Positions 4,325 to 58,205 of a DNA stretch of 64,000 nt are shown here, piece after piece. Below the pieces are notes generated by a model, which worked only from the letters and a program-made list of their open reading frames with translations, was not told where the DNA came from and made no database searches. The DNA comes from Eukaryota sp. TZLM1-RC (Eukaryota; Protista; Metamonada: BaSk clade), in assembly GCA_040285825.1 (NCBI GenBank), contig JAUPSS010000007.1, forward strand, positions 2,268,689 through 2,332,688, read 5' to 3'. How positions within the stretch are numbered: the first letter of the stretch is position 1; every line of letters begins with the position of its first letter. The position numbers and the translations under genes were made by a program.

Positions 4325-6469
4325 ATGACAGACACCCACTCTGTGTCACGTGTATTCACTCGGTCTTGTGCACTTAACTCGCTGCTGACCCCTGCAGCGG
4401 TGCAACAAATTCGGACTGACCTTCCTTTGGTCACCCAGATTTGTCATGAAGCTTCTCTATTGCATCAATCTTTTCTTCTCAATTTTCCGTTGGCATCTAG
4501 AGCTTTAGTGGAACAGGTTTTATGGTATCCGTTTATGACCATCATCACCACTGGTTCTTTTCCAAAGCCTTCCACATCTAAAGGCCAACGCCAATTACTC
4601 CATATCATTTACAATGGATTTCTTCCTGAATGCTCACAAGACAGGTCTCTTGTTTCTTTGTGGGAAAATTCTTTAGTGCCTTACAGAAATTCATTCAATC
4701 TTTTTCTCAATGCTTGGCTGCAATCTCAGAATTTGTAATTTTATCAATAGACAAGGCTTTCTCTTTACCTTGCTTGTCGGGCTCGTCAATTTGCGTCTAA
4801 TGTGAAGACATGTTTACCTAAAATTTGTCAATCCTGGACAAAAAACTTTATTCGTGCTCATTTTAGAGCCTGCATAAAACAAATGTCTTTGCAAATAATA
4901 TTCTTTCACTTTTGCCAGATGAACCATTAGCCCAACCCGAGGAAGTAGTTGTTGATTCTGTTCTTGAATACTACATCAATTTCAATTTGAATAATTCTAG
5001 AGAAAGATTCTTTTTATTAAATGCATGTAAGTTTATCTTGACTCTCCTTCAAAGATTTCCTACCACCGCCTCTCTACTGTCCTCACATGATAAAATCACC
5101 TTTTCATCAAAGGAAATTGGTGAGCTTTTTCTCTTTAATCTTAAAATTTCACAATACTTACTCACTTTCTTTTCTCACATGCATTGCTGGAAGAAACTCA
5201 GAATAATACCTTTAGCCTCTCATAAAGGTTCTAAATTTCATGAGGTTTCTTCACATATTTTCCACTCTGTGAAAAAATTTCCACTTATTGAAGGATTATC
5301 TTCCAAAACAAAGTTTATCAAAAATACATGTCTGAAACGAATATTCAAACAATGTCCTTGTCAAAAATTTAATATCAACATAAAAAGTTTGAAAAATAGA
5401 TTTAAAAATTTTTATTGAAAACTAATGGTAATGAACTGCTTTTGACCTTTGAAGGTAAAAATAATGACTCGAAATTCCACTCTGTGAAAAAAATTCCACA
5501 TTTTGAAGGATTATCTTCCAAAACAAGGTTTATCAAAAATACATGTCTGAAACGAATATTCAAACAATGTCCTTGTCAAAAATTTAATATCAGTTTGAAA
5601 AATAGATTTAAAAATTTTTATTGAAAACTAATGGTAACCTTTGAAGGTAAAAATAATGACTCGAAAACAAAGATGAGTTGGATGAAGCACCGAAAAAGAA
5701 AAGAAGATCAAAACATGAAATAAAAAGTGACCCTAATGCCAACAAAACCAGAGAAACACAATTGAAGGACACTAAAGAAATGCCCCGTCGAAGATGTAGA
5801 CATCCAGTCGAAATTTTACCTGAAAGGCCCTTTATTGGCATTGATCTGGGCCAATCAAGATTATGTGGTTACTTCTTAAATGATAACCAATGTGGAATTA
5901 TTCCTTGTCCAACTGGCAGGAGGTACAGGACAAATCCTTCACCCAGTAAACACTCTCCCAACCAATATTCCGTTCAAAATTTCAACCAATATTTCAACCA
6001 TTGGAATTTGGTTAGGAGGAAAGTGTATTTGAAAAGTAATCGCCAGAAATGGAAGATAATTAAATTTGATAACCGAAGACGAAAAGAGAGACGGTTCAGA
6101 GAGACTCTCAACAAATTTCAAAGGCTGGCTGGACATCCTGATAAACTCTACCTTGCTGTGGGTTCTGCTAATTTCCCTTCACATGGCCGAAAAGTCAATC
6201 GATATGGATCAGCAAGGGCTTTCAGAAAATGGTTGTGTTATCAAAAGGACGTGAAGCACTTGTCAACCAGTGAATTTAATACAAGCAAACTGTCAAGTTG
6301 TTGCATGGCCGAGAATACTCAAACAGGCTCATGGCAGATGCGTGTTTGTACAGAGTGTCAAATAGTATATGACAGAGGTATTTCCGCTGCAAAAAATATT
6401 CAAATTAAGAAGAAAGCGGAATTGTGGCCGGAAAGATACATTTGCCCAGATGCTCTGTTGAGAAGATGA
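4325..6469 (+). pseudogene. Fanzor nuclease (locus B1), full length but frameshifted
   Basis: N-terminus RSCALNSLL...EQVLWYPF aligns with locus C. RuvC-I IGIDLGQSRLCG, RuvC-II region AVGSANF...SEFNTSKLSSCC, Zn finger and RuvC-III CTECQIVYDRGISAAKNI (Asp to Gly here, Asp in B2). Several frameshifts and an internal tandem duplication. Confidence 0.85.
5260..5666 (+). repeat. tandem duplication (about 215 bp plus about 192 bp) inside Fanzor B1
   Basis: ttccactctgtgaaaaaa...aataatgactcgaaa occurs at 5260-5474 and 5475-5666; single copy in paralogue B2. Confidence 0.9.
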
Positions 6470-6501
6470 ATGGGGAACCTGAGCATACAGAAACAAAAAC
6501 T

Positions 6502-6721
6502 TTTGAGACCGATCTACAAATGCCCTAGTAGCATTTGGTAGATCCACTTAGATACATCAAGTCGCGAGGCTTTGTTCTGTGAAAGCAGTAGGTGTATTTA
6601 AGTGAGGTAGCCCATTGATGAAGATCATGATTGTCTTTGTCAAATGATGCTACATGTCTCTTACAGCCTGTGAGTAGATATTGTGAAAGTTGAAAACAGG
6701 AGTGAATTTCACAGGGGAATG
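6502..6721 (+). ncRNA. putative Fanzor omegaRNA scaffold (type B)
   Basis: Directly 3' of the Fanzor stop and conserved at 30204-30413. Closing stem GAGAC/GTCTC encloses GATCTACAAATGC/GCATTTGGTAGATC, ACTTAGATACATC/GGTGTATTTAAGT (with a CTGT-GAAA-GCAG tetraloop arm) and GTAGC..TTGATGAAGAT/GTCTTTGTCAA..GCTAC. Confidence 0.7.
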
Positions 6722-6778
6722 TATGATAAGATAAACTCACAGTACTCCCAGGCTACAACAATAACATACCTGCTTTTG

Positions 6779-7504
6779 ATGGATAAGATCAGCAAGCTAT
6801 CGTTTTCATCAACTGTATATTCTGCTGTACTACTATTGACTTGTTTGTATATTTTTTATCCTTATGAAACCCGTCCATATTGCTCCTCTAGTTCATGTCC
6901 ATCTTTTTCATCAATTTTGCTCAACATAATCACTTCTATAGCTGCAGTCTCTTTCATCACAATACTCATAACAAGTATCTTCATTTTGAAATTATCAGGA
7001 CACAAACTAGATCATGCCTGGACCTTCAAGTCTCTTTCTCTCTTAGCTGTTTTCTTTTCTTGCATTTCGCTTCTCCTGTGCCTGTCTGTATTCTTCCGCT
7101 ACGCTCCTATGGTACAAGTGTCATTCTTATATGATATTGAGTTTATTCATGTAGACAGACCAGACAGCACATCATTGATCATATCTGGTTACCCTAAAGA
7201 GTGGATAACTCAATTGGATTCCTCAACTGAGTTCAAGGCCACACTATATAAAACTTTTGTTACTTTTTCCAATGATGATCTGCTCTATCCGCATGTATCA
7301 CTTGAATTGGTAGCCGAAGGAGTAACTCTGGCAGAAGATGATGGTGATTTGGTTGTTGTAATTACTGAGAAGTTATCTGGAGATTATTTAATAGTTTTGG
7401 AAGCAAGTACAAACTTTTTGAAGGTGAGTGACTTTGAATATCGAAGTGTTTTGTATGATTCACTCTATGTCGATTCTAGGTTCTTAATAAATATTTCTCT
7501 TTAA
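6779..7504 (+). CDS. hypothetical membrane protein (about 3 N-terminal hydrophobic segments)
   Basis: Long ORF; likely ATG at MDKISK; hydrophobic stretches followed by a soluble region. Confidence 0.55.
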   Translation: MDKISKLSFSSTVYSAVLLLTCLYIFYPYETRPYCSSSSCPSFSSILLNIITSIAAVSFITILITSIFILKLSGHKLDHAWTFKSLSLLAVFFSCISLLLCLSVFFRYAPMVQVSFLYDIEFIHVDRPDSTSLIISGYPKEWITQLDSSTEFKATLYKTFVTFSNDDLLYPHVSLELVAEGVTLAEDDGDLVVVITEKLSGDYLIVLEASTNFLKVSDFEYRSVLYDSLYVDSRFLINISL

Positions 7505-7983
7505 TTCTTTGAACGAGTTTTGGTTCTTGAATCACCACAAATGTAGCTTTTATATATTAATTCTATTTTAAATGTCATTGGCGAACATTTTCTAAAAGAT
7601 AGTAAATTCACAAGTAATAGTAGGTATAATGGAATATACCCCTAATCCATATCACTAAATTGGTGTTTCTTATATCATACATCGTGAAAATTACACCTTA
7701 CGCATCGGATTATCAGGAGTATAAACAATTCTTCAATATCTATAGGTCTACCGGGAGTGGAATGGGTACAAAAGCTCAAACAGAATTTTGATCAAAAATG
7801 TCTCTGATAACAAAGTCTTTTTGCATTAATTGATTTAAAGATTTAGTACTGACTATCACCATCTATTTTTCATAAAAAATATGGCATTTATTAACAAAAA
7901 AGTGAGAATCCAAATCACACCTTAAAAACATTGAAAGATCAACAAGACTATAAAGACTAAAAAATTCTACAAAGAAGCAAATG

Positions 7984-19408: not shown

Positions 19409-19785
19409 TAGGCACTTGTTGAATCGTGGTTTTCTCTGGAAATGCATTATCTGAAATGTCAAATTCCAATACTTCAAGCACATCGACATGTCTAAACTCA
19501 ACCATCCGAAGATGATCGGCTTAGATCAAAATACGTTGGATTTGAAGACTCTTATTGAGGTCTTCTTATAGCTGGGGGTCTTGTATTCAAACAATACCCA
19601 CTTACTGCAATCTCCCACTGGTTTATAATAACCCACTCAGTATTACTGTGAGACAAAACTGTCCATCAATTGGATTGAATTCATCCATGTGATTTGTTCA
19701 AAATGCATTTTTTAGTTACATTTTGGAACAATTCATCAAAATTGACACCCATTTAATCACATATAATTTTATACAAAACCGAAAA

Positions 19786-23790: not shown

Positions 23791-25975
23791 CTGATTTTGA
23801 GAACAACGATCAACCAGTATGTCATTGATGGTCTTTGAATGCTGAAACTGAACAATCATAGTAAGAATACCTACTCTATAGTCATATTAAAATATTCACC
23901 AAACACATGTATGAAAACTAAATTTTAAAAACCAGACTTGACCCACAACATCTTGATTTGGTTGCTTTATTGATATGGACTATCTTATACAATTGAACAG
24001 AAAATTAAATTCTGTTTATCAGAGGTTAATAATGGATATGTAAAGTTCCACTAATTTTCAAAACGAACCCAAGGCAAAATCGACAGGAAAAAACTAATAC
24101 CAATGAAATTTTTGAATCTCATTTTTCAGACACAAATTGTTCAATTCTTCAAGTCAAATAACTGTAATTTCAAAGACAATGTTATCCAACAAGTTTTTGT
24201 TCAATAAACAATTCAAAAAGCATCTACATGATTGTGAGAATAACGCATGCCTGTCTTGAACTCTGATAAATCTATTCATTTCTATCAGCAGCTATGAGTA
24301 TAAGAAATAAGGTCTTCATATCTTCGACAACTTCTTGGTTTTGTTCAGGATTTTCAATGGAGAACAGAAAGAAAGAAATTTGATAAGAAATTGTCAATCG
24401 ATAGTAAGATTTTGAGTGTAACTGAAGAAAACAATCAACACCCGGAAAACCGTTTTGAAGAGTACCCTTACTCTTATTTACCCTTGTTTGACGTAATAGT
24501 GATATGACAATTCGGACTCATAGTGGAGCAAGAATTGGTTTAGAAAGATCAAATCATATTATTCAACTATTAGGATGTCCTAAATTTGCCCAATTTTCAT
24601 TTAAGATTGATCCCAATTGTAATATGAAAACATAATTCCAAAAACTATTGACAAAAACCATGAAGTTGAATAAGATCAGGACGTATTTAATAAATAAGTG
24701 GCTTCATGGTTCATTTAGTAATTCGTTTTGGTAATTCTTTTCCAAACCCATCCACCTCCCAAGGACAACACCAACTACTACTTATCTTTTACAGTGGATT
24801 TCATCCTGAATGCCCACAAGACAGGGCTCTTGTTTCTACATCGGAAAATTCTCTACTTCCTTATAGAAATTCATTCAATATTTTCCTCAATGATTGGCCG
24901 CAGTTACAGAGATGCAATTTTATTATAGAAAAGTACTTTTTCCTTACCTTGCGTGTCGGGCTCGTCAATTGGCATTCAATGTTAAGAGGAGTTTACCTAA
25001 AAATTGTCAATCCTGAACAAAAAACTTGATTCGTGCTCATTGTAGAGCTCTGGATAAAACGATTGTTTTTACCAATTATCTTCTCTCTCTTATACCAGGT
25101 GAACCCTTGGCACCCCTAGAAGCTAGTGAAATAACAAAAGGTGAGCAACCCGAAGAAGTAGTTATTTATTCTATTCTCAAGCCCTACAGAAATTTCCATT
25201 TTATTAAATCAAAAGAAAGATTCCTTTTATTTAATACGTGTAATTTTATCTTGAATATTTTTCAAAAATTTCCTGCCACTGCATCTTTACTATCTTCAAG
25301 TGATAGAATCACCTTTTCTTCAAAGAATTGGTGAGCTTTTTCTCTTTAATCTTAAAATTACACAATACTTACTCACTTTTTTTCTCATTTGCATTGTTGA
25401 AAGAAATTTAGAATAGTACCATCAACTTTTCACACAGGTTCTAAATTTCTTGAGGTACCTTCACATGTTGTCCATTGTGAAAAAATTTCCGCTTATTGAA
25501 GAGTCATTTTCCAAAACAAAGTTTATCAAAAATCGATGTTTAAAAAGCATATTGATACAATGTCCTTACAAAAAGTTTAATATCAACAGAAAATGTTTGA
25601 AAAATAGATTTAAACAATTTTTATGAAAACTAATGGTAAAGAACTGCTTTTGACCTTTGAAGGTGAAAATAAGGACTCAGAAAACACAGATGAGCTGGAT
25701 GAACTACCGAAAAAGAAACGAAGATTAAAAAAAGAAATGAAAAGTGACCCTGATGCCAACAAAATCAGAGAAATACAGTTGAAGGGTACTAAAGAATTCC
25801 CTGTCGAAGACGAAGATATCCCGTCGAATTTTTACTTGAAAGGCCCCTCATTGAACATTGATCTGGGCCAATCTAGATTATGTGGTTACTTCTTAAGTGA
25901 TAATCAATGTGGAGTTATTCGTTGTCCAACTGACAGAAGATACATGACAAAACCTTCACCCAGTAAACACTCTCC

Positions 25976-27200
25976 TCTTCGTTTGAATCCTTTTTTATAA
26001 TTCAAAAAGTTCAAAATGAATTGATTCCCAGTTTATTTTTATTAAAATCATTACAACTACAAAATCAGTTTTTAATATTCAGACACTGTATAAATTCAAT
26101 TTATGATGTACTGGCACCCCGAACAGTTCCTTATGAATGCACCACGATGGGTTTTCATCTTGGGGTTTCAGAATTTGTTGCTTATGTCAACTTAATAGGA
26201 ATGGAAGAATCAAATAATTTTGACTTAATTTATTTGCCTCATTCTTTGGGTGGATTAGGGTTTCTCCATCTGGGACAAGTTACACATATTTGCTATTCAG
26301 TTTCTGTATACTTGGCTGTACGTGATCTTGATTTAACGAATTTAATTCCAAATGATCAGTATAGGGTTTTACTATCAGCTTTATCACCTTCTTTTGCAGG
26401 TTTTGACTCGATTTGGGACAAACGAATCAAAATTTGCCAACGTCAAATCACTCATTTATTTTATAAGGAAAAATTGAGTCTTTTGAAGGAAAAACTATCA
26501 GAATGTGAACGACTACAATTTATTTCAAATTGTAACAGTCAATCATCTTGTTTTTTGAAAGTTTTGCCTATTTCTCAAAATTTTACGTTCTCAGATGATT
26601 GCTTTAAATATCTAATATATATGAGATTGCTTCAAGGATAACAATTTGTGATATGTCCTTTGTGTGGTTATGGCCTAGGCTTTGATCACTCGTTTCAATG
26701 TAGAAAAGTCTCGAGAATGGTTACACAAAGACATGACGAAGTAAATAATTTTATTAACGAACTAAATAATTTTGAATCTGAAAAGGAATTTAAATTTGGT
26801 TTAAATAAGCAGTTACGTGTTGATGGCTTTCAAACGTCAACTAAAATTGCTTTTGATGTTACCATAGTTGGAAGTTATGGTAATAATTGGAGTGATGCTT
26901 TTTCGAAAGCTTATTCTAATAAAATTGCAAAATATTCCATTTTAAAAGAATTAAATTTAATTAACCAAATTGTTCCTCTCGTTTTTAGTGTTCATGGGGG
27001 TTTTTACACTAAAACAAAAATACTGTTTGACCAATTTGGATGGAATGAGGTAGCAGATGAAATTAGTTGTATCATTTTGAAGAATAGCTTTAAATGCCAC
27101 AGTGCTTTTAATTATATACTTCAAAAGAAAAGAGAAGATCGTCAATGTTGGTAGGTAGTTTTTTTAGTGTTCAAATAGTTTCTTCTTAATTCTCAATAAA
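25976..27200 (+). mobile_element. 5'-truncated RLE non-LTR retrotransposon (family RLE-4) with 14-bp TSD
   Basis: IYLPHSLGGLG thumb motif, CPLC...H..QC knuckle, RHD, RVDG...FDVT...KIAKY...PLVFSVHG endonuclease; TSD agtaaacactctcc at 25962-25975 and 27201-27214. Confidence 0.9.
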
Positions 27201-27502
27201 AGTAAACACTCTCCCAACCTATATTCCGTTTAAAATTTCAACCAATTTTTGAAACATTTGAATTTGGTTAAGAGAAAAGTGTACTTGGAAAATAATCGCC
27301 GGAAATGGAAAATAATTAAATTTGATAAGATTTTCGAGATCTTGACGAGATCTTTGCCTAATCTTCATCTTGCTGTTGTGAAATTACAGAAATCTGTTTC
27401 AACTGGTTTTGAAGACCTGGATTTTTCTAAACGACTTAGTGTGACTAAGATTAATAATCCCGTCTTTGCTGCCTTTTTATCAGACATCCAGAATTGCACT
27501 AG

Positions 27503-28922
27503 TGTTGCCTAAAGTCTATTGTAGTAAAGAAAAGTCAATGAGGAAAAGTTGATTTATTTTCTAATCATAACACATAAGCCTTAGGGCGCCAACACTGCTT
27601 CTTCCCTTTTTCAAAATAAATCAGCTTATATGAATATGATACTAAAACTATGAACAAATAACTAAATAACTATAATTACTAAGAACTAAATACTGAATTC
27701 TACTGTTTTCTATTGTCTACAATTATCTCTGTAGTGATTGGGATTCGCGCAAGAAACTGGTTTTATATTTTTAAGATCGACAATTGATGTACTATGACTC
27801 TCCTACAATAATGTTAGTATAAGATAGTAAGCAAATAACTGAAAAGGGCCTCGTTCCAAGATCTCTGTGTTTGAATACTTTGTTGTGTATGTTTTAATCG
27901 CTACATAAAGCGCTCTGCTTCTTCCCTTTTTCGTAAACGAGAAACGTGGTAGTGTCGTTTAGTAAAGGTATCATGGAATCGAAGAATGGATTCGCTAATG
28001 ATCATGCAGGGTCTATGTTGGATCAAAACAACAGTTAACGAAGTAACAAACTTCAGAAATTTGAAGGCGGCGTCTTTTGTTGTTAAAGTACTGGCTTTAC
28101 GACTAAAAATATCAGAGGAGCAAAGACCGTATCTTTGCATTTTAGTACAATAACAGTGGAGGTGGAGTTTCTACTCGTAACCTCGTTTTTGGTCGACTTC
28201 TCTTGTGTTTGGCTCCATAAGGAAGAGAGCTGCTCGAATGAATAAAAGTCCATTGATTCGAGGTAAGGCTCTGTGTCCTTGTTAGGAGGATCCATCAATG
28301 GAGTCATCTTCTCCTTCCATCTCATCAAATTTAGATTATGTGAATTTCTTCATATTCTCCTAATGCAGAAGACGTGTCTAAGGTGGGATTTCCATCCGTT
28401 CCCTTTGAGACAGGTTCTACAATTGGGAGGGGAGAGGGAGCCAGGTCCGTTCTCGTTACCTCTTCCATTGCTTTGAGGGGAGAGGGAACCGGGTCCGTTC
28501 TCGTTACCTCATCTGTTTCTTCTTTTCTTTTGACGGGAGAGGGAGCCGGGTCCGTTCTCGTTACCTCTTCTGTTGCTGAAGATGGAGGGACCTCGTCCAC
28601 TCTTTCATCTTCTTCTACTTTAAGGGAGGGGGAGGTGGGATCCGGGTCCGTTGCCTCGTTACCCTCTATATCATGTATATGTGACGCTGGTACCTGCTGC
28701 ATATTAAGTGGGGGATTAAAGTCAGAGATATCTGGTTGGAAGATGTCTGACATGCTGTAAAGTGTCTGGAGATGTTCACTAATGCTGGAGTTATGGTATA
28801 CCTTTTGACTTTAAAATGGCCAATAATTATTGTTGCCTAAAGTCTATTGTAGTAAAGAAAAGTCAATGAGGAAAAGTTGATTTATTTTCTAATCATAACA
28901 TATAAGCCTCAGGGCGCCAACA
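27503..28922 (-). mobile_element. miniature non-autonomous LTR retroelement (TRIM-like), 92-bp LTRs, 4-bp TSD
   Basis: Direct repeats 27503-27594 and 28831-28922 (2 mismatches), each TGTTG...CAACA; TSD CTAG at 27499-27502 and 28923-28926; polypurine tract aaaaagggaagaagcag abutting the 3' LTR on the minus strand. Confidence 0.88.
28331..28753 (-). CDS. acidic Pro/Thr repeat ORF inside the mini-LTR element
   Basis: 140-aa ORF with three EVTRTD(P/L)(A/V)PSP repeats; the reading frame decays downstream. Confidence 0.4.
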   Translation of the reverse strand: MSDIFQPDISDFNPPLNMQQVPASHIHDIEGNEATDPDPTSPSLKVEEDERVDEVPPSSATEEVTRTDPAPSPVKRKEETDEVTRTDPVPSPLKAMEEVTRTDLAPSPLPIVEPVSKGTDGNPTLDTSSALGEYEEIHII

Positions 28923-30203
28923 CTAGTTTAATATCTCAGCAACCAAGGCCATTTGGTCTTCACTTATCAAATGAAGCTTGGAAAAAAAACATGCGTTTGA
29001 GATTAAGGATGTATCCAAGTGGTCTTTTGGATAATTCTGTTTGTATTTGTAACGAAAAACCGTCTGCAAATCTCCGTCATATTGTAAGTTGTAAGAAATT
29101 TCTTCAATATCGGTCAGTTCTTCATAATGCTGTTCGTGATGTGACATATGAGATGTTCAAGTGTTACAATTTTAGTTGCAAAGTAGAAGCCTTGCTGAAA
29201 CATTATAGCGATAATAATTTGTTTAATTCACGTCGAGGTGATTTAATTGCTCCTTTTGTGGATTCCTTTCAAGTTGTTGTTGATTTTACTACAGTTGATC
29301 CCTTTGCTATTATTTATCGTGGTGATGTTTTAGTTAGTTCTAATGGTCACTTGAACAAGGCTGAGGTTCGTAAACAAAACAAATATACTGAGATATTAAA
29401 TGATTTAAATAAGAACCTTTACTCGAAGTTTTCGTTGTTCCTTTTGCCTTCTCGATTTTTGGCAACATTGGACAATCTGCCTTGATTTTTCTCAATGATT
29501 TTGATAATTTATGTCGTTCATATGGAAAGAATTTTCAATGAATTTATGGAAGAATCGTATCATTTTTGCTTTGTACAGAAGTGTTCCCGAGTACTTAAAT
29601 TTAATGATGTCCAAGCTGTATAAGGATTCATCAAGAGTTGGCGTGGAGAATTTTGTTTCTTATGTGTTTTAATGTGTTTTGTTTTGTTTTGTTTCTTCGT
29701 AGAATAAATAATTCTTTTTTTAAAAAATTTGATAACCGAAGACGAAAAGAGAGCCGGTTCCGAGAGAGCCTCAACAAATTTCAAAGGCTGGCTGGACATC
29801 CTGAAAAATTCTACCTTGCTGTGGGTTCTGCTAATTTCCCTTCTCATTGCCGAAAAGTCAATTGATATGGATCAGCAAGGGCTTTTAGAAAATGGTTGTG
29901 TTATCAAAAGGACGTGAAGCACTTGTCAACCTGTGAATTTAATACAAGCAAACTATCCAGCTGTTGCATGGCCGAGAATATTAAGCAGGCTCATGGAAGA
30001 TGCGTAATTGTACTGAGTGTCAAATAGTATATGACAGAGATATTTCCGCTGCAAAAAATATTCAAATTAAAAAGAAAGCAGAATTGTGGCCGGAAAGATA
30101 CATTTGCCCATAAGCTTTGTTGAGGAAATGAAAGAAGAACCAGAGCATACAGAAACAAAAATTCTCGAAATTCTTTTGTTTTATTTTGATTTTTTTAAAA
30201 ATT

Positions 30204-30413
30204 TTTGAGACCGATCTATAAATGCCGTAGTAGCATTTGGTAGATCCAATTAGATACATCGAGTTGCGAGGGTTTGTTCTGTGAAAGCAGTAGGTGTATT
30301 TAAGTGAGGTAGCCCATTGATGAAGATCATGATTGTCTTTGTCAAATGTGTCTTACAGCCCGTGAGTAGATATAGAGAAAGTTGAAAACAGGAGTGAATT
30401 TCATAGGGGAATG
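30204..30413 (+). ncRNA. second copy of putative Fanzor omegaRNA (type B)
   Basis: Homologous to 6502-6721; several substitutions keep pairing (e.g. GATCTATAAATGC/GCATTTGGTAGATC uses U-G). Confidence 0.65.
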
Positions 30414-42009: not shown

Positions 42010-42139
42010 GACAGTGGATCCAATAGTCTAACCTTGGCTTGAGGAAGAATTTACAAAAAACATTAAAGAGGTCACAAATATTTAGAGTTCTGAAGAATAA
42101 AGAATTTTTATTGGCAAATAATAACTACACAATATTCTG

Positions 42140-42279
42140 TGGTTTTCATTTGAAATGCATACTTTCGTCAAGCATCATTCAAACTTATTCCAAGAACTTT
42201 CATTCTTGGTGAGATCGTCCACAGACGTTCTAGAATCCTCGAATAATTGGCCACCAATCTCAGTGAGCCCATTTCTCCT
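42140..42279 (-). ncRNA. putative Fanzor omegaRNA scaffold (type C)
   Basis: Directly after the locus C stop. Hairpins CCAAGAAT-GAAA-GTTCTTGG, CGTC-TGTG-GACG, GGCTCAC/GTGGCC and AC-GAAA-GT; stems TTATTC/GAATAA and GAAATG/CATTTC. Confidence 0.65.
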
Positions 42280-44133
42280 CTAGAACAATACGTAGCTTTG
42301 AAGCTGGTTTCTTTGTGGTCTCTGGAACGCTTCTGGTCTTGTTCCATAGTAGTGCTCACTAATTGCAATTTCTAGCTGATTTAGTGATGCAGAAATGTCT
42401 CTAGACCATACTTGATTACATTCCGGACAACTGAAATAGGCGTTGTGAACTTTAACTTCACCATCAACTTCTCGATAGATCTTTTGGTGTAGCATCTTAC
42501 AGCAGTTCACCTTTGCAGATGTCGTATATTCATCTCCGATCTTCACATTAGCAAATGAACATTGTAACAACTTGAGAAACGCCTTACGTGGAGTTTTCAC
42601 TTTTTGACGTGATGTACCACCACCTCCATTGCCAAACCACACCTTTACTTCTCGACCGTTTGCAAATTTTTTCACTTTGTTGATAATGGAGCTGAATCTT
42701 TTCTGTTTTCTTATAAAGAAGTCAAATGTGTGTCTCCTCAATGCTTTTCGAGCACTCAGATATAATTGCTGCTTGAGCAATGATCATCTTACGTTATTAC
42801 CTTCATAGTCCTTATAGTCACCGATAGTTGATATTTCAAGCAGATAATGGTTCAATTTCTGCACGTCATAAACATCTATTGATGAGTGGGTCAGTGAAGC
42901 GGAGTGATTGATTTTTCGTTGCTTTGGTGCCAAGAAGATATTGGATACGGTCGGCCCTGAACGTGTTCCAATACTGGAACCACATAGATTTGAGTGGTTG
43001 GGGTCGATGGCCCAGAACACCATTTCCGTTTCGTCATCAGGTGCCTGCCACTCAGTAGCTTTTGGTTTCTGGCGAGGTCTTGGCCGTTCAACCTTGGCTT
43101 GCAAGGTATGTTTTCTATTCCGAGTGGTTTCATAGTAATCAAGTTCCCCTTTGGATCTCTTATCAGCCAAGGCTTCTCCGGACAATCTCACTCGTGTTGC
43201 TTTGGGGTGCGGTTTGAAAGTTATACGGACACTATCACCATTAGAAGACATGGTGTAGTCATTAGCTTTTGTTTTAAACAATAAATAAGGGTTTTTCAAA
43301 ATTGTTTGTGATGTGTTTTTGGAGATAAAATGGTTGAGAACCCATGTGGAAAAGGGGACAAAAGCAGGCTTCAAACTAGCGATGGGAGTGAGTCTATGTC
43401 GTCTAAAGTTATATGGAAAGGCTTGCTCCAGGTCGTTTTGGATTGTTAAGCCGCAACGAAAGATGTAGGTACTGTTCTCTTGATTAAGAGTCACTCTTCG
43501 AGAAGAAAGAAGAGTGTTGTACCTTTGAGGATCACCAACCAAAAAGTTAAACAGAGTAAGAGCCATGGTATGGTGAGTGTTGAACCAAAAAAGAAGAGGT
43601 TCACGAAAGTTCGTGCTATTGTGAAGAACAGAACCAGCATAAGTGGCTGGTGCAGGGCAGTTATAACCTACCGCATACGAGCGGAAGAAGTTAAGCTTCC
43701 ACGACACAAGTCCATCAGCAAGAAGCTGCTGGTAGTTGCCTTGCAGCTGGCGGCACTTTGCATCCACTAGTTGTTGTAGAGGCCTACTAGTGGGTAGTGC
43801 ATGATTACGACCTGTTCGTGACAAGAACAAGACAGCAAACGGCCATGATGTAGAGATTCGCTCGAGCTTCTCATACACATGGCCTTTGCCAGGTCTGTTA
43901 AATGGATGTCTGACTTCTGGCTTAGAGACCGCCACAAAGTCAAGACACTGGATCCAGAATTGATGCTGAGTCAGGAAATGACTGTCTTCAGGGAAGCGCA
44001 CAGCAAAAACTCTGGCCAGCAAACTGCCGAGGTGAGCCATGGTGGTAACCTTGGTCAGCTGTCCATCAATGTAATCACACACTGGCCGCTCAAAGAACTG
44101 ATGAAGGGAGCAGGCACGTGCCCATGACTGCAT
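42280..44133 (-). CDS. Fanzor RNA-guided RuvC endonuclease (locus C), 617 codons, single in-frame TGA at codon 450
   Basis: RuvC-I VFWAIDPN, bridge-helix region LRRHTFDFFIRKQKRF, VWFGNGGG...GDEYTTSAKVNCC (Fanzor-type shifted Glu), CPEC...WSRDISASLN, RPEAFQR. The two ORFs are in the same frame across TGA 42784-42786. Confidence 0.9.
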
Positions 44134-45248
44134 AGTCCTTACTGAAAACGGAAGGTGCAGACAATCAAAAATGATTGATTTCTCAGTTTCAGTTACTTTT
44201 AAAATTTGGTTTATTTTCAACTCCTTACATCCACAAAACAATGAAACATGCACAAACTGATAAATAGATACATTTATAATAGATACTGGACATGCTTTAA
44301 GCATTTTCTTTCCTAAAAATAGTAAACTGATGCGAAATTTGACGAAATTGTTGTTAGTCAAAGCAGTTGTTCGTTTAATCAACGGTGTTTGTAGATTCAA
44401 TAAATTCGTAAAGTTTCACAATGTAATTCCTTTATTCAGAACACACATGTTACCAAGGGAAGTCACAACACCCGTTTCTTCCTTACCATTTCTTTCCCTC
44501 TTTGACGAAGAACCTTTTGCTCTTCGTTCAACTATATCTGAGTTTGCCATGGATCTTTGTGGAACTGTTGGCTTTTCTATTATAGCGATTATAGGTTTCG
44601 TTTAGTGCGCTCACACATTGACTATAAAACATTGAATCCCATAAAATAGACTAACAAAAGACAGTCTGTAGAGACACTACTGGCTATTCTTGAGTCTAAA
44701 CTCGAGTCTATTGCAGATCGTCCATCCCAAGCTGTGCCAACAACTTCTGCTGTGTCACCCCTTTCAGCTGCACTTCTTGTCTTGAAACTAGACATCTGAA
44801 TACTTATTATTACCTTGTCTCTCTACTTCGCCCTCTTCACCCTCTTTCTACTCATCTTTCTTCCATAGAAGATGTTCCTCCTGTCTTCACTTGTATTACC
44901 ATCACTTATCAATATACACCCTTACACCTCTGGTATCGTTTGTTCACTCTCTACGAATCAACTCACTCCAATCTTAATCTACTCCACTCTAACCTACTGC
45001 TGATATACATGAACTTCTAAAGTCTAATGAGCAGAAGATTATTGAACTTAATGAACTCCAATTGAAACTGCATTGAAGACACTTGTAATGTTAGTTACAT
45101 GGCTTCCTTGCAGAGATTGATTTTGACTAATTTCATATTAATGTAGTGTGATACGATAATAAGTCTGAAGACGTCCACGCTGCTATGAGTGAAACCTATC
45201 CCCTTGATTTCAGGTTCGGACTCTTGAGAAAGAAGATTTTCTGGTTAA

Positions 45249-45302
45249 TAACCTATTTCTACCTATAAATAACCTAAAGTAACCTATAAATAACCTATAA
45301 CT
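45249..45302. repeat. short tandem repeat (about 10-11 bp, AACCTATAAAT-like)
   Basis: taacctatttctacctataaataacctaaagtaacctataaataacctataact. Confidence 0.6.
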
Positions 45303-45605
45303 AATAGTTCCAAAATAAAATATTATCGATTCATGTTTTATTATAGTGTTCGTTCAAGTGTTGGTAAAAAGAATAGTGTTGGTGAAAGAAGTGGTGTGGT
45401 GAAAGAGGACTTTATAATTAAGGTGAAGATTGAGGAAGATTTACCTGTTCAATGAATAGAATCTGATACTCCTCTTTTAAAATTAACACAGTAATGTTAT
45501 TAATTCTAGGATCTGACATATATGTCATATATGGTGTAGAAGTTTAGCTAAACTTCAATTCTTATCACATAAAGAAAGTATGTGTTGCTTCAAGTAGAGC
45601 AAAAA

Positions 45606-46004: not shown

Positions 46005-46439
46005 TTCTAGGGCAACTGATCAACTTCAATAGCTTAATGGGATTACTCTTCTCTTGCTTTATGATGAGATTGGAGACGAGAGAGGGTGCGTTCGCAAGCA
46101 GTATAGTTTTGATGAGAGCGATCCAACTGGGAAAGCAATAGAGCATTCTCATCACCAATAGTTTGTGTAGAAAAACAGAACACAACAGAAATCAGAGCAA
46201 CAATGTTTGGTTGTAATTGTGTCAATTATTGGCACAATAAATTGAAGATGGTGGCATATATGGTTGAGAAATATGGGGTAAGTAGCAGCAAAAAAGAAGT
46301 GACGAAATGAAATTCAAATGTAAATCTGAGGAATGGTAACCACACAACCAAACTCATCTCACCAATTTTTGTATCATGTAATTCTTTTTTGAAGAAAGGA
46401 AAACATTCAACATGTAAACTGAAGTGATATGTACCATCA

Positions 46440-47930
46440 ATAAATATTTAAAACTTACTTTACTTTGAATTGCCAACTATAAGTTTGATTGTTTTATTGC
46501 TGAATGTGACATTGAGAAACACATCAAATTTTTTATTTTAAAAATTTGTTATTCTGGAAAATTCACTCATATTTTAAGGTCAACTCCCCCATCGGTATCT
46601 CTCAATTCTTGCAGATCTTTTAACAAACTTCGAGTCAAATTTTTTTTCTTCTTTATAAGAAGTAAATGAATCTTTAATTCGAAGTCATGTATTTTGTTCA
46701 GCAGCTTTGGGTGGAATTGGACTCACCAAATCTTCGATTCTGTGTAAAGCAGCATTTTTGGGAGGTGGTAAAAATTTTGCTTTTGAATTTTTCCAAAGGT
46801 TCCCTTTTGATGTTCATCTGATCAATGGTGAATCAAATTTTTACTTGAATCAACTCCAATTTGAATTAGAAAATTTGCCAAGTGATATCTGGATTCAGTG
46901 TTTTCTTCCAAATGTTCAAGAAATTCCCACCCGATCACTTCCAAATTTACGTTTTTGCTTGAAAAAGCTTCAGCACCATCTGGTTAAATTATATGAAGGC
47001 TTGGATTATGAAGTAAGACTTGGCTTGCCCAAAACTAAAAATCCCGCTTTCGGTAATTTTTTAAAGGATATTCGTGATAGTTCAGCTGTTGCTTTAGTAG
47101 CTCAAGTTCCCTCTGTTTATGGACTTTTGTTAAAAAACAATGAATGGCTTCTAAACATGCGTTTTCATTGTTTTCTGTGGCCAAACAATTTGCCCAATCA
47201 TTTAACTTGTAAATTTGGTAAACCTCTTTTGTTTACTCATCTTTTGAACTGTAAACATTTCATTGCGTTTAGAAGCAAAGTGCATAATAACGTCAGGGAC
47301 CAAATTTATGTAATGTGTAAATCATATCGAGTACATTCCTTTTTAGAACCGCTGTTATCAAAATTAATTCTTGATGATCCCAATATTGATAGTACGCGTT
47401 ACAACAGAGCTTCTATGGGTCTGACTAGAGAAGATCTAGTTGTTCCTGGTTTAAATGGTAGTTTTACTATTTTGGACGCCATGTCTATTGACCCTTGTAA
47501 TTCCTCTAACGAACATCTCATTGACTCGGATGTAAATAATCCTCTTCTTGCAGGCGAAAAATATAAAATTGCTAAATATGCGAAACCCATTTCCTCGGTT
47601 AATGAAACTTCTCATGCCCAATATAATTTATGTCCATTTGTTTTTTCTTTGCTTGTATCTCTAGGTAAGGCTGCTATGGCTTTCCTTGAGGATTTTGTTG
47701 TAGTTGTAAAGGAAACAACTGGAAGAATTTTCAATCGTGTTTACTGGCAAAACAGGATTGTATTTTCTATTTTTAAGGGAATGGTAAAACTAATTTCTGA
47801 TTCACTATCTTCTTTTGGAAAATTTTCTGAATCTTTAGCAATTAATTGTTTTGATGTAGGGGAGGCAGGTTTTGAGGATGTGGAGTTTTAATTGTGTATT
47901 TCATATTTGTTGTTGAATAAAAATTAGTAG
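46440..47930 (+). mobile_element. RLE-2 non-LTR retrotransposon, 5'-truncated (ORF 46707-47891)
   Basis: LGGIGLTK, HLLNCKHF, RSKVHNNVRD, DAMSIDP, KIAKY, CPFVFS. Confidence 0.9.
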
Positions 47931-48026
47931 AATAAACAAAATAAGTTTGATTGATTTCCTTGAATTTTCTGATTAAGGAAACCAATTGTTAATCATGTCC
48001 AACTGTATTTTTTTGTGTTGACTGTC

Positions 48027-49573
48027 ATGAATAACGCTCTACAAACCACAACTGTGGGAGCGTCTGCCAACCAGTTTTTTGGCTCAGAAGCAGGATAATC
48101 TATGGAAAGGCAATTCGAAGTTCTCGCTAGTATTGGAGCTCATGCTACTCATTTAGCACGACCCTCTATACTCCAATACCCAGAACACTCTATGTGGCTT
48201 ACTCAAAGCCAGTTCTGGTGCCTCTGTTTCGACTTTGTTTTTGAAAGAGAACCTAAACAAAAAAACCATTATAGAACCAGCCTGTGGATTTTCTAGCGCT
48301 GCAACATCTTGTTCAGCACTTTTGGCTATGGCGCCCACTGAATGAAACCACGTCAGCTAACGGTGTGAGAATCTGGTGCCACTCCAGTCTGCTTGGCAGT
48401 CTAGCCATTCAACTGTAGGAAGCTTTCTGCCAACTGTTGGCTGACAGCCTGTTGTGTGGAAACACAATTGTTTCAACAGCTTTGACCAGAATCGTCCCAA
48501 AAAGTACACTGGGTGTGTACTTAGAGATCTTCGGCCGGTGATACCATTTCACAATGGAATGCACCAACATATTTTGACTCACTGGCTACATAGGACAGTA
48601 AATGCCTATATTGGTGGAATTCAAAATATGTTGGAAACCTCAATGAGAAATAAACTATTTATCATAAATGTGCAAACTGCAGCCACAATCTGTCAGTCAG
48701 GACTGAACATTTTATCTTTTTCAGAAGATAAATGCCCTGCGGTTATGAAAAGGCACTCTCTCGCCTTTATCCAGTTGGTATCAATGCTTCTGCAGTTTGA
48801 ATAAAAAAGCCCAATCTAATTTACAGTGTTCGGCGGTGCGGGGTGTACGGGTTCGTGCTGGGTGCGCACCCCGTACCCTCAGTGCGTGAAGAAAGTGGTG
48901 TGGTGCGGGTACAGGGTGCGTTGTTCTATTTAACAATAAAAGAAATTACATATAATTTATACTAGATCAATAAGGTATTAGTCAATAGTCAAATCATCTA
49001 ACATTGGTCAAATCATCAAAAAATGGATCTACAAACCACTCAGCTTCAGATACTTCATCCTCAGACTCAACTTCATCAACCTCACAATCTTTTGATGTCT
49101 CCGATCCCAAATTTTCTTCAAGCTCATAATTGCTATCATTTTCTTCTTCGATGATGCTTTGGACACCCATTCCGTCTCCTAAATAGTCTACTGCTAGTAC
49201 TTGTCTAGCTAACTTCTCATTGTGCTTGATGAAGACTAATTTCCGAAGTTTTTCTGACAAGATTCTGTTTCTCTTCTTAGTATGAATAGCTTCATACTGA
49301 GACCAGTTTCTCTCACAGGCTGAAGCTGAAGCAACTTGGGCTAGAATTCTTTGCGCAACAAACTGCAGTATCTTTCATAGAACGATCTATCATGATGACG
49401 GAAGGGTAAATAACGCTAAGTTCGATTGCCCTCGATGTCAGACCAACTGGTCTAAGGACATCTTAGCCTCCAGAAATCAGCTGGAGATTACAATCAGTGA
49501 GTATTTCACTGGTACTAGGTCAGAACCATTCCAAAGACCAAGGCGTGTGAGACGTCTAAGGAGACAGCAGTAG
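48027..49573 (+). pseudogene. Fanzor locus D, central part replaced by a hAT remnant
   Basis: YPEHSMWLTQSQFWCLCFDFV aligns with locus C FPEDSHFLTQHQFWIQCLDFV; 49371-49573 reads CPRCQTNWSKDILASRNQLEITISEYFTGTRSEPFQRP, matching the locus C C-terminus. Confidence 0.85.
48824..49370 (-). mobile_element. hAT DNA transposon 3' remnant
   Basis: hAT dimerisation domain ILAQVASASACERNWSQYEAIHTKKRNRILSEKLRKLVFIKHN; terminus CAGTGTT at 48824 with GC-rich subterminal repeats. Confidence 0.85.
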
Positions 49574-49685
49574 CTGTTTTCGCCAACGAAAATCCAAGGT
49601 GTTTAGTGTATACTAACCCTTGGTACTGAGAAGTTTACATCAGTGTTGGCGATATTTATTCCTTTCCATTTGATGTGAAATTCTT
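49574..49685 (+). ncRNA. putative Fanzor omegaRNA scaffold (type D)
   Basis: Starts just after the stop. Closing stem TCGCCAAC (49580-49587)/GTTGGCGA (49645-49652) encloses CCAAGG..TTAGTGTATACTAA..CCTTGG and ACTGA..TCAGT hairpins. Confidence 0.65.
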
Positions 49686-50149
49686 AGTAGTTCTCACTCC
49701 TATCAATTTGATATAGTCAACATCGACACATAATGGACCACAACGTATTTCTGAAATTTGCAATTCAAATACATTGTTTTGATTTTCCTTTTGCATTTCC
49801 CTTTACAACACCCAGCACAATTGTTGCGGCTTGGTCAATTGATTAACAAAACAATAAGATTACCACATACTGACGGTTATAATTAACAACAAATAGATTC
49901 AAAATAATTGAAGTATCATATTTGGCATTTTTTCAATTGAACCAGTATATTATTTCCAATATTCAATGCATAATCGAATAGGTTGTACTGTAAATTCACA
50001 ATCTTGTCTTGTTCAGTAAACGAAGAACAACCATGTACAAAAGTGTTTAAAATCTGTCTGTTGATTTTATAAAAGTTTAAAATTTCATTTTTTGGCAAAT
50101 CACTAAATTGAAAACAAGACAATACACAGAGTTTATACAACATTCACAA

Positions 50150-52130: not shown

Positions 52131-52289
52131 GAAATTTCTTGTAAGCTCTTTTTCAATGTCTTTATTAATTCCAACCAGAAACTAAACAACAATCTTAAAG
52201 CTGCACAACAATACCAAATCAGCAAAAGAGAATTGACCGGAAGTTTTGCCCTCAAAAAAACGACCAAAAGATGATAAAGCAGAAAATAA

Positions 52290-52950: not shown

Positions 52951-53119
52951 ACTTTTAGCTATTGGTGTAGAATATGAACGTAATGCTGTGAGTAGGTTCA
53001 GTAATAGTGACGCTTGTTTGGAGGATATTGAATTCTAGATGGGTTTTTTATCTCAATAAATATTCCAGTTTTTTTAAAAAAATTAATGCTTCTAAAATTC
53101 TTGTTTTTAAATACATTCA

Positions 53120-54780: not shown

Positions 54781-54819
54781 CTCCAAAATTTCCAGCATTA
54801 ATTTTCAGAAGCAAACTCA

Positions 54820-55718
54820 AACTTTGAAATAAAATAAAACGTCGACTATTTATTCAAACAAACATCATTGCATGAACAATCAAACTAGGAAAAAAACATC
54901 TGAGTTTAACAAGATAAAGAACCTCAGCGAATCTTTGACTACACTACATGTCTTCCAACAAACAAGGAAGATATGTTGTTGATTTGTGGATAAAGTGTAA
55001 CAAAAGTAATCTGCAAACGATACCATCCAATAATGAATGAGGCCAGGTTCGAGTATTGAGATTATGCCCGGCTGCTTATTCTTGATTCTTAAAAATACAG
55101 ATACATGTAAAATCTTCAATGATATTGAGATAGTGCAGTGGGACGTAAATTGAATGGTTTTATAGTGACAAAAAGGCAGGAGCCATTATGTAGTTTAATT
55201 ACTTTGTTTATATGGATTTTGTTACCAACACGTTTTGAGCACTACAGAAGAAGATCTGACATGTGTTGGCTCCTCGCCATAGTTAGTTGTTTGTTCTTTA
55301 CAGTAATCACATGATGCCACGTCATCACGTATTAATCTAGATATAATTTCATTTGATTATTCACTCCCGTTGTAATAAACACCCTGTTTTCCCGTTTATT
55401 ACCCGATGCATGCCCATGATGATATTGACCCAACACATGTACCATGTGAACTGGGATTTATATATTTTGTTGACATGTAAAGCAATGAAGCAGGAATGTT
55501 ACAGGGTACGTCACTCTAAGAACACTCTCGTAGCAAAACTTGGTAGATATGTACTCTAACCATTTGAACTGCTTGAAGGATTTCACAAATTCTAAATTTC
55601 CCATATTGCCACATCGTGCCACAACCCAAAAGGAAAGACCTTCACTTCAAAGACGACCCATTTTCCATGTGAAAATCCACATGCAGAAATGGCAACACAT
55701 TGTGAATAACCCTTCTGC
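54820..55718 (+). repeat. decayed duplicate of 11240-11965, including the 5' part of the 11726-12700 gene
   Basis: Second intron donor mutated (gt to at), small deletion, solo LTR inserted, truncated where Fanzor E begins. Confidence 0.85.
55264..55435. mobile_element. solo LTR (172 bp) with CATG TSD
   Basis: TGTTG...CAACA termini, CATG on both sides, internal AATAAA; the empty site gacatgtacc is visible in the paralogous segment near 11665. Confidence 0.85.
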
Positions 55719-55719
55719 T

Positions 55720-58075
55720 ATTTGTTTCGTTAAATACGAACTGTCTGCGTCTTGGCCTGTCGTCTTGCTCAATAATTTATGCTGCTGCATCCGCAGATAG
55801 GTCACTGGTTGTATCATCAACAGTTCTGGTATCAGTGTATGGACTTTGTGATGAAGGTCAATCCTCCAGTCCAAGCAATCTTTGAGAACCATCAGGAAGT
55901 TTACAAGGCCTTCTCTTATGCGAATGACCCAACCGAATGACCTGTATACCCTCTGGGTTGTGATAAAAGGACTGAAAACTGGTGTCATTCTGTCATCCGG
56001 AGCTTTTGCGCATTTCAAATGTCGACCAGCTTCTGTTAAACTATGACAGATGGCCCAGTTGTATAAAAGCTCAACTTCTATAAAACCATGGCAGTGTTTT
56101 TTGACTGTGAATCTCCGAAAAAATACGTTGTTGCCGTTCTCAAAGATGCAGCCGTTTCTGAGCAGTTACTGGGTTGGTGTGAGCAACATCATGCTTTCAA
56201 CCTTGATTTATTTAACCAACAAGTAGGTGACCTTGCCGAGTTCAAAGCCCTCATGGAACGCTGAACCAATGACCTTTAGCTTCGCCGCCAGCTTCCGTAT
56301 TTTGTCCTTCCTCGAGAATGAGGCGGGTGAAAAAATGAAAAGGCGTGCTCTGGCTCCCTCCGCAAGTTACTCTCCTGGCTTTATTTTATTCAGCCAGATA
56401 TTGACAAAACACCTTTTACGTTTGAACCCAGACAAACAATCTTTGAGGAACCCATTCAAACATTTCAACATGAAAAATGTTTCCCCATAGACCATTGCAT
56501 CGGATGGAGTACAAGTCAGATTAACTTTTTGGGCAGCCCTAAAAAAACCAAAAACCGCCGCACAGCCAGAGAATTCGCAGCCGATAAAACCAGTGGCGAA
56601 TACGATATGCTTGCAAAGAGTCGAAAGCGAAACTGCGAACTTCAACAACAGGTTTGTCCCAGGCAATTTCCAAAAACTGATGACGCCTACGAATACTCAG
56701 TTTGTGCAAATAATCTTACCCAGAAAAATTTGTGTGGCTATTCAATTGGATAAAGAAAAGATGATAACAGTGTTGACCATCAACTTTTGGGCCTTGTTTT
56801 AAATTCAAAGGCAAGGAAGATCATTCATCCACTGGTCTAGACCCATGTATCATCTAAGTTGCTATTTTGTACAGGATTTCCGCGAATGTCTGTGTGAAAT
56901 AGCAACGCCATTGGCATTGGTATTGACAAAGGAAGAAATCAGGAATCCCGGCTTCCGTCCGAGAACTATACTAGACCAATTGCTGATAAATGGAGATTGC
57001 TGAGTCCTGCGCCGCAACAAGTTTGACTTCTTTAAAAAAAGCAAAAATTGACTAATAATATTTATTGAAAAAATACACTGGTGCCTGTAATTAGTCTCAC
57101 TGAGACTAATTTTGTACTCCGTATTTTCAATGTTTAGGACAATATTAGTTTCAGTGAAACTAATTCTGCACTGAGACTAATTCTGCACTGAGACAAAATT
57201 TGTCCTGATGTTCTGAAGTAATAAAAACACTTTATTTGGTCGAAATATTCCAATACATAGCAATCTTCATCATCTCCCTCCAAGATTGAGGAAGATTGTT
57301 GTCTGTTTCATTTTCATCAGTAGAGGGAGATTCATTAGCAGCATTATAAGACGAAGGATTGCGGAGCTCAACTTTCGCAAATGCTCAAAGGATAAGGGAC
57401 CCTGAAAAGATATTGTTCATTAACAAAGGGTAGGAGCTACTGAAAGGAACAAACTAGACAGAATACAATCTTTGATATGTGTTTAATACCACACTATAGT
57501 TATGTTTTCGAAGTTTCATATGTGAATGCTCCATGAAAAAGAGGTCTTGTTTACTGTTGAGCTATTACATCCATTGCAAACTTTATCAAATGGAATAATT
57601 TTAAACAATATTAGTCTCACTTGAGGAGTTTGGGACACCTCTTGAACAATATTAGTCTCAGTGAGACTAACTGTGCACTGAGATTAATTTTGCACTGAGA
57701 CTAATTACAGGCATGAGTGTAAATAGCTAGTGAAAGAGAAACAAAAATTTGGTTTGGAAGTGGGGGTGATAAGCTTTCAAGACAAGCTCTTAAGACCCCA
57801 GAGAATCTCTTTTAGAAGGAGATTCAGAAACATTTTACATATGTGAAGCCTAATGGAGATGAATTCTACACATCTGCCAAAACTAATTGCTGTAAGGTAT
57901 TGAATCAAAAATTGTATCATGATAATGGGAGTTAAACAATGATAGGTTTGTTTGCCCTCAATGTCAGACATTTTGGTCGATAGACATCTCAGCCTCCAGA
58001 AACCAGCTGAAGATTGCCATGTGTGAGCATTGCTACAATAAAAGACCTAAGGCGTTTTGGAAACCCCATAGATAA
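55720..58075 (+). pseudogene. Fanzor locus E, 5'-truncated, degenerate, split by a MITE
   Basis: HPQIGHWLYHQQFWYQCMDFV; RRALAPSASYSPGFI; TIASDGVQVRLTF; NLCGYSIG; KWRLL; LRRNKFDFF; after the MITE IWFGSGG...GDEFYTSAKTNCC...CPQCQTFWSIDISASRNQL...KRPKAFWKP. Confidence 0.85.
57076..57719. mobile_element. MITE (644 bp), Tc1/mariner-type TA TSD
   Basis: TIR CACT(GG/CA)TGCCTGTAATTAGTCTCA at both ends, TA at 57074-57075 and 57720-57721, subterminal TGCACTGAGACTAATT repeats; removing it rejoins the Fanzor E sequence. Confidence 0.9.
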
Positions 58076-58205
58076 GTGTTTTTCCATGTATTGCGTACCT
58101 GTACGCGTATTGTGGTGTTGCTGCTGCAACTATCATTTGATCGTGATATCATATAGTTATAGAACTAAAGTAAGTTTAACGTTGATCAAGATTACATGAA
58201 ATTTC
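58076..58205 (+). ncRNA. putative Fanzor omegaRNA scaffold (type E)
   Basis: Directly after the stop. Closing stem CATGTA/TACATG encloses GCGTAC/GTACGC, GTTGC-TGCT-GCAAC, TTGATC/GATCAA and TAGTT-ATAG-AACTA. Confidence 0.65.

Follow-up and report, generated by a model that had tools for sequence, protein, structure and literature searches.

What kind of element leaves several broken nuclease genes with conserved 3' segments in one stretch of a protist genome, with no transposase beside them, and where does it insert? The question is raised by a 64,000-nt stretch of DNA (the window) from Eukaryota sp. TZLM1-RC, a strain that we assign to Skoliomonas litria, an anaerobic flagellate of the Metamonada with a free-living habit. 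An earlier note, made from the letters alone, had listed five loci in it (B1, B2, C, D and E) as encoding homologous proteins of the RNA-guided TnpB/Fanzor nuclease kind, with long DNA similarity between B1 and B2 only and with later insertions of a hAT fragment in D and a miniature inverted-repeat transposable element (MITE) in E. These three statements are borne out. Translated search recovers each of the five loci and brings the total of Fanzor/TnpB-family remnants in the window to six (B1, B2, C, D, E and F), every copy broken. The window copies are dead, and their worth is as markers of their families. All counts below are drawn from the window and 12 fetched loci (L numbers) chosen by protein identity, start codons are gene predictions or starts of open reading frames (ORFs), and the queries for protein searches included an intact sister protein and family alignments. 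In this set the right ends of the elements lie just before host start codons far more often than random non-coding positions do, and this placement is a more unusual property than the headline features of the earlier note. The explanation that we favor, with a probability of roughly 55%, is that these are decayed copies of several families of non-autonomous Fanzor1 elements with an omegaRNA at the right end, inserted by a one-ended copy-in process that uses an enzyme supplied in trans and prefers gene starts, and retained through the action of their nuclease.

Fixed right ends and host start codons

Five C copies, 98% identical, match one another as far as base 42137 and diverge immediately beyond it. 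Equally sharp right ends are found at 49687 in D, at 58200 in E and at about 6714-6727 in B, as well as in a GEM-RC1 family and a TZLM3-RCL family, the last two from the sister genomes that also carry Fanzor families. The left ends are ragged: the C copies reach leftward to at least three different limits, their outer segments being of two alternative kinds, and the left parts of two D copies carry a common captured retroelement tail. No pair of terminal inverted repeats (TIRs) bounds any locus, no right end bears a poly(A) or simple-repeat tail, and no transposase ORF flanks any locus in the window or the fetched loci; that the copies lack a cognate transposase or TIR, as had been claimed, holds for the whole set. 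Neither a shared left motif nor a TTTT target was seen at the ragged left ends. Direct repeats at both ends occur in L006 (6-7 bp) and around the D element of L008 (8 bp), and B1 has a 10-bp candidate duplication (3868-3877), its left end not being independently defined. A TIR cut-and-paste transposon (Mariner, hAT, MuDR or Sola) was rejected on the absence of a TIR pair and on duplications that are either absent or, in two copies, 6-8 bp long. The possibility that the element is a spliceosomal intron found no support, as no matching donor was found and the ends of E, of the TZLM3-RCL elements and of some GEM-RC1 elements are not YAG (those of B, C and D are); the host introns examined measure about 31-37 nt. 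At the outermost C left boundary (the 45531-45514 region of the window; 4504-4516 in L004) a small hairpin, differing between the two, lies at or overlaps the junction, which may be chance.

Nine of the 20 right ends, from all three species and six families, lie at most 80 nt before the start of a host ORF on the same strand. The distances are 14 nt in L002, 41 nt in L004, 80 nt in L010, 8 nt in L005, 48 nt in L006, 28 nt for the D element of L008 and 24 nt in L012, where the host gene encodes RtcB; the two docked ends in the window are those of B1 (4 or 64 nt, depending on the ATG) and F, which ends 16 nt upstream of the ATG (19408) of an RRM-domain gene. Only 3.6% of random non-coding positions in the same loci are docked in this sense, giving p of about 1e-8, and p remains at 6e-5 if the background is set at 10%. 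In L010, the right end of a B-family element (3366-4759) abuts the left end of a C element (4748-7991), whose own right end is 80 nt from the start of a host gene for a 615-aa protein, so that two families are stacked at a single gene start. We found nothing on Fanzor placement at gene starts in the literature, our coverage of which was incomplete. If the pattern reflects true targeting, placement before start codons would amount to a rule of integration not described before, one by which the expression of host genes is coupled to a selfish nuclease.

Fanzor1 proteins and candidate omegaRNAs

At the sequence level, B1 and C match the Pfam family Cas12f1-like_TNB, both slightly below the curated cut-off, PF07282 matches 11 of 13 members below cut-off, and a sequence search of the PDB matched no chain. 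Intact sisters of C, 609 aa long and 98% identical in DNA, lie on three other contigs within a cluster of 24 members, and an AlphaFold2 model of one (predicted local distance difference test score, pLDDT, 80) has Fanzor1 structures as its top seven PDB matches (SpuFz, PpFz and GtFz; E 1e-12 to 1e-8; Z 17.1-19.7 over about 500 aligned residues). Cas12, TnpB and Fanzor2 folds follow well behind, with the next family at Z 13, TnpB at Z 11 and the Fanzor2 structure 9b0l at E 3e-3. As modeled, the C-type protein has the Fanzor1 architecture, which is distinguished by an expanded REC and an altered WED, and is nearer to Fanzor1 than to Fanzor2 or TnpB, so the proposed Fanzor identity is upheld by a fold that matches Fanzor1 structures over the protein length. 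Membership in the IS607/Fanzor2 group was rejected on this fold and on the absence from 13 loci of a gene for the serine recombinase TnpA that partners such elements. The description of the nucleases as compact does not apply, as about 600 aa is an ordinary Fanzor1 size.

The catalytic triad D377/E535/D579 of the split RuvC is kept in intact copies of all three species, as is the zinc finger CC..CxxC followed by RD579; with the triad intact, a nuclease-dead regulator of the TldR kind is not supported, and neither is a reassigned TGA codon at the C stop, where the sisters carry arginine. E535 lies 8 residues before C543 and occupies the alternative position of the RuvC-II glutamate, a position that marks Fanzors (PMC10711439); the same E..TS....CC occurs in B. 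RuvC-I reads DPN with an invariant N in the C, D and E types and DLG in B, and since the DPG fingerprint has been called near exclusive (PMC10711439), the DPN protein is a variant. The WED motif is (S/T)(N/D)G before a beta strand in the full-length families, being TDG in P0043 and TNG in B. The motif set said to be common to all five window proteins does not hold for D, which lacks G(N/S)G and E..TS because about 250 codons (about residues 266-513), RuvC-I and RuvC-II included, have been lost from it. All three D copies (window about 48750-48790, L007 and L008; window copy 80% identical) change frame at the same CT-rich spot. In all three GEM-RC1 copies (L001, L005 and L006) the frame changes at one place near codon 297 of the Fanzor gene, which the annotation bridges as a 29-nt GT-AG intron that would remove the beta strand after the WED motif; this may be a real intron, a shared lesion, a programmed frameshift or an assembly error.

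The C, D and E types share 39-44% mutual identity. The single lineage that had been described for all five loci is overstated, since B stands apart, being distantly homologous to them by profile (probability 99.3%, E 3e-20, 19% identity), and its assignment rests on that match, the model of the B fragment having a pLDDT of 31. The tree, which has no outgroup, is unresolved, and the long branch that carries B could not be placed in it. The genus holds at least ten protein families, 24-45% identical to one another, and multi-copy families with intact members are found in three Skoliomonas genomes at unrelated sites, so the genome-wide radiation envisaged in the earlier note is in fact genus-wide and includes intact members. 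Each of the close homologues of C is annotated in Eukaryota sp. TZLM1-RC. Length-limited word searches of 5.8 billion proteins revealed no relatives outside Skoliomonas (one such search could not show full-length B), 38 matches among 1.84 billion representatives were from Skoliomonas wherever checked, and scans of viral, metagenome and prokaryotic contigs with one or two short patterns gave no matches. Judged by language-model features, the closest clusters are Fanzor-like proteins of giant viruses, which is a lead only. The genus was not found in the Fanzor literature that we searched, and no paper joining Fanzor and metamonad came to light; within that incomplete coverage, the lineage is undescribed as had been suggested. 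The C copies, 98% identical, differ by synonymous to non-synonymous ratios of 8:19 and 7:15, which is near-neutral, and two TZLM3-RCL copies have a ratio of 36:30, indicating purifying selection between sublineages. The drift of the former set against the selection on the latter fits a protein that would be functional during spread and lose function after insertion. One TZLM3-RCL protein, P0097 (775 aa, in a cluster of 24), has an N-terminal extension that weakly matches Ulp1/C48 protease (E 0.002).

Every gene had been described as followed by a multibranched fold. In best windows, strong folds follow B1, where z reaches -6.8, C, where it reaches -5.3, and D, where it is -4.5 to -6.5, measured against a background in which z falls below -3 in 1.7% of random 130-nt windows; the folds of E (z about -1, its sister in L009 being alike) and B2 (z -1.5 to -2.5) are not above chance. 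When windows of a fixed 130 nt are set to end at the boundary, z is -5.0 for D, -2.0 for C, -1.5 for both B1 and B2, and -1.0 for E; the B1 and C signals therefore depend on the choice of window, and D, which alone is clearly significant in fixed windows, is the firm case. A conserved structured 3' region runs to the boundary in B1, C, D and the GEM-RC1 family, and in E the segment is conserved with an unsupported fold. In B, C, D and GEM-RC1 elements a segment farther upstream pairs with the final 6-8 bases, so that a terminal stem closes at the copy-defined boundary, as the closing-stem architecture put forward for these RNAs would have it; Fanzor1 RNAs have been described as ending in a stem, not a pseudoknot. 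Three D copies retain 26 of 26 pairs; two of the changes in them are two-sided and two are G-U changes. A 3' motif common to C, F and GEM-RC1 copies makes their RNAs partly homologous, and the count of four different RNAs in the window therefore falls, with C and F homologous and E unsupported. Nor is RNA divergence itself a surprise, since Fanzor1 omegaRNAs of 75-150 nt with different scaffolds have already been published (PMC11423790). Rfam gave no match in four sister loci, and no group I intron was present there.

The characterized Fanzor1 proteins SpuFz1, GtFz1 and PpFz1 (PDB 8gkh, 9cer and 9cf1; PMC11423790) resemble the Skoliomonas family in their whole-length fold, REC/WED/RuvC/TNB order, alternative RuvC-II glutamate, size of about 600 aa and structured 3' RNA with a terminal stem, and RNA length and scaffold differ among their members as well (PMC11423790). 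By contrast, the Skoliomonas proteins are only 10-15% identical to them, have DPN or DLG instead of DPG, and are not carried by a TIR transposon. The nuclease class, the RNA diversity and transposase-free one-ended Fanzor1 elements are thus already known, and what is new is the DPN lineage, the extent of the radiation within one genus and the docking rule. The native role of Fanzors is an open question, and because the copies in cultured Skoliomonas include intact ones that spread recently and have RNA ends precise to the base, guide choice and homing are directly testable in it; about ten divergent natural Fanzor1-RNA pairs (24-45% identical) also offer a panel for protein-RNA co-evolution and a source of editors.

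Spread and retention

In known Fanzor and TnpB systems the transcript continues past the scaffold into the right flank, from which 15-20 nt serve as guide. Each Skoliomonas element would comprise one Fanzor1 gene with an omegaRNA scaffold at its right end and, its guide being taken from the flank, the nuclease would be expected to cut the empty version of the occupied site and so keep the element there, or re-copy it, by break-induced repair. A guide from the right flank allows TnpB to cut the empty site and drives retention of IS605, IS607 and IStrons (PMC10690162); those systems share the presumed retention role and differ in carrying TnpA, in being bacterial and, for IStrons, in containing a group I intron. 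At docked sites the 5' leader of the host gene and its first codons would supply the guide, and transcription of that gene would have to start within the element or pass through it; the element may itself drive that transcription. New copies would arise by one-ended DNA copy-in that prefers gene starts, and the fixed right end together with the ragged, flank-capturing left ends argues that copying starts at the right end. The copy-in enzyme would be supplied in trans, as may hold for Helitron2-type CRe or unclassified MCi-2 elements.

Precedents are CRe-1/2/3, MCi-2 and CMe-1A, Fanzor1 elements that lack a transposase and TIRs and combine a constant 3' end with 5' ends that vary (PMC3627910). 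CRe-1/2/3, Helitron2-type elements of Chlamydomonas, likewise keep their 3' ends intact, are often truncated at the 5' end, carry captured sequence there and in some copies have variable duplications (PMC3627910); they differ in their TTTT target and asymmetric terminal repeats, which were not found here, and in that placement at start codons has not been reported for them. The unclassified Fanzor1 elements MCi-2, MCi-5 and CMe-1A (PMC3627910) also lack TIRs and have near-identical 3' and differing 5' regions, yet MCi-2 has regular, patterned 11-12 bp duplications and transposase fragments, while here duplications are rare and at least ten families share one genus.

Several observations weigh against copy-in at gene starts by a trans-acting enzyme and against the omegaRNA assignment. 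The ends of C, D, E and B2 are undocked, leaving only two of the six window ends docked. No Helitron Rep/helicase was detected in the window or the 12 loci, nor any other mobilizing enzyme, and most copies have no target duplication. The target-adjacent motif (TAM) is not readable, because the left ends are ragged. The D covariation is not significant against shuffles (68 of 500) and draws on three to four close copies, and the B scaffold, compared across four copies, has one-sided changes only and no two-sided ones.

With these points included, one-ended DNA copying in trans is our first choice of mechanism, followed by retrotransposition in trans and then by self-propagation of the nuclease. 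A more far-reaching claim, which we advance only tentatively, is that these are a class of transposase-free RNA-guided elements steered to the bases before start codons, which would draw their guide from the leader and the first part of the coding sequence of the host gene and take over its transcription, so that the host cannot lose them, and of which at least ten families with partly re-invented scaffolds would have radiated in this niche within one genus.

The same nuclease and RNA could instead be copied by target-primed reverse transcription, performed in trans by non-long-terminal-repeat (non-LTR) retroelements with a restriction-like endonuclease, and a sense insertion behind a host promoter would then give a full-length transcript to copy. 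A fixed 3' end, a variable 5' end and occasional duplications are what such copying would leave, and candidate helpers that produce 11-14 bp duplications lie throughout the window; we nonetheless consider this unlikely, given right ends with no poly(A) or simple-repeat tail, the absence of duplications from most copies and C copies that carry no donor 3' flank. About equally doubtful is the view that docking is survivorship, in which a compact genome tolerates, and leaves intact, only those insertions whose right end supplies a promoter. The fetched loci are enriched for intact copies (7 of 15 docked) and four of the six decayed window copies are undocked, as this would predict, although selection alone would not favor sites 8-80 nt upstream of an ATG above intergenic DNA that is neutral and rich in repeats, the decayed relics B1 and F are docked, and the C element that lies between a B end and a host gene in L010 points to a repeatedly used class of site.

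Spread with no helper at all, in which the Fanzor-RNA complex cuts new or off-target sites that are repaired from the donor in a transposase-free form of homing, is in our judgment improbable. The absence of a nearby transposase, the intact triad in a protein under selection between sublineages, and left ends with captured flank, which fit strand-invasion copying, all speak for it; set against them, the right flanks of copies are unrelated, so a donor guide would not match a new site, and elements are multi-copy despite common alterations (the D frameshift; the GEM-RC1 frameshift or intron), which suggests that spread does not depend on a working protein in cis. Least probable is that a rolling-circle enzyme recognizes the 3' folds as hairpins at the DNA end, in place of their being guide-RNA scaffolds, with Fanzor as passive cargo. 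A hairpin about 12 nt before the fixed end resembles Helitron ends and the E and TZLM3-RCL folds are weak, yet the stems tolerate G-U pairs and bear GAAA tetraloops, both RNA-like features, and the folds are multi-branched, 120-220 nt long and placed where all characterized Fanzor RNAs lie.

Loci and neighboring DNA

Table 1. Coordinates of Fanzor relics, candidate RNA segments and an adjoining host ORF in the window
Feature	Position	Strand	Remarks
B1 Fanzor relic	4325..6469	+	at least 3 frames; RuvC-I is DLG
B1 candidate omegaRNA scaffold and right end	6498..6714	+	kept in 4 copies; z to -6.8
Host ORF, 261 aa	6719..7504	+	begins 4 nt after B1 terminal stem; second ATG at 64 nt
F, sixth remnant, absent from the earlier list	19555..19626	-	tblastn E 3e-5 within region
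F 3' segment	19425..19554	-	terminal motif common to C and GEM-RC1 copies
B2 Fanzor relic	~24706..30131	+	interrupted by two retroelement blocks
B2 candidate scaffold and right end	30191..30406	+	decayed: 10-nt deletion; fold not significant
Non-coding left region of the C element	44134..45517	-	common to sister copies, extents 45260, 45389, 45517
C Fanzor1 gene	42280..44133	-	one in-frame stop at 42786-42784
C candidate omegaRNA scaffold	42137..42303	-	5' hairpin, closing stem, two GAAA-capped hairpins; right end 42137
D element upstream region	46297..46491	+	separated from gene by non-LTR retroelement ~46493-47940
D Fanzor relic	48027..49573	+	RuvC-I/II region replaced by hAT fragment, 48824 to ~49335
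D candidate omegaRNA scaffold and right end	49570..49687	+	best-supported fold
E Fanzor relic	~55725..58075	+	many stops/frameshifts; MITE 57084-57711
E conserved 3' segment and right end (58200)	58073..58200	+	87% identity to sister L009; fold not significant

The relics listed in Table 1 have decayed in different ways. B1 is frameshifted and carries an internal tandem duplication of about 200 bp (5268-5470 and 5483-5685); its conserved end is possibly 11-13 nt longer than the scaffold given in the table, and the host ORF behind it has no confident Pfam family. F consists of the C-terminal 24 codons of a C/D/E-type protein. The two inserts in B2 are a non-LTR retroelement (about 25977-27200) with a 14-bp duplication and a block of long-terminal-repeat (LTR) and non-LTR DNA (about 27330-29724) with an 11-bp duplication. 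The 609-aa sister ORFs of C stop at the codon corresponding to 42306-42304. The hAT fragment in D has a TIR at 48824 and weakly matches the Pfam family Dimer_Tnp_hAT, and the 5' end of E is truncated by an unclassified repeat (54819-55718) that has another copy at 11237-11964 (91-97% identical).

A broken Fanzor1-like relic with canonical DPG, cut by the window edge, occupies positions 1 to about 1500 on the minus strand and has no significant similarity to the C/D/E proteins. Retroelement DNA is common around the relics. In L011 an LTR (7865-7964) starts 3 nt past the right end of a TZLM3-RCL copy, and E and B2 in the window, too, have retroelement DNA behind them. Non-LTR retroelements (reverse transcriptase with a restriction-like endonuclease C-terminus) lie at 21265-23770, 29000-31884, 33170-37323, 46493-47940, 51400-54700 and 58225-60375, the longest open piece being 35572-37323, and a small LTR element at 27500-28924, with 97-bp direct repeats and a repetitive ORF, is also present in L007 and L010. 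A minus-strand fragment at 45606-46004, just beyond the left end of C, resembles a bacterial ComEC/metallo-beta-lactamase-fold protein by eye and has no Pfam hit. In L007, the D element and the host gene downstream of it form an inverted duplication (1-3936 and 5393-9328) that is 99.7% identical.

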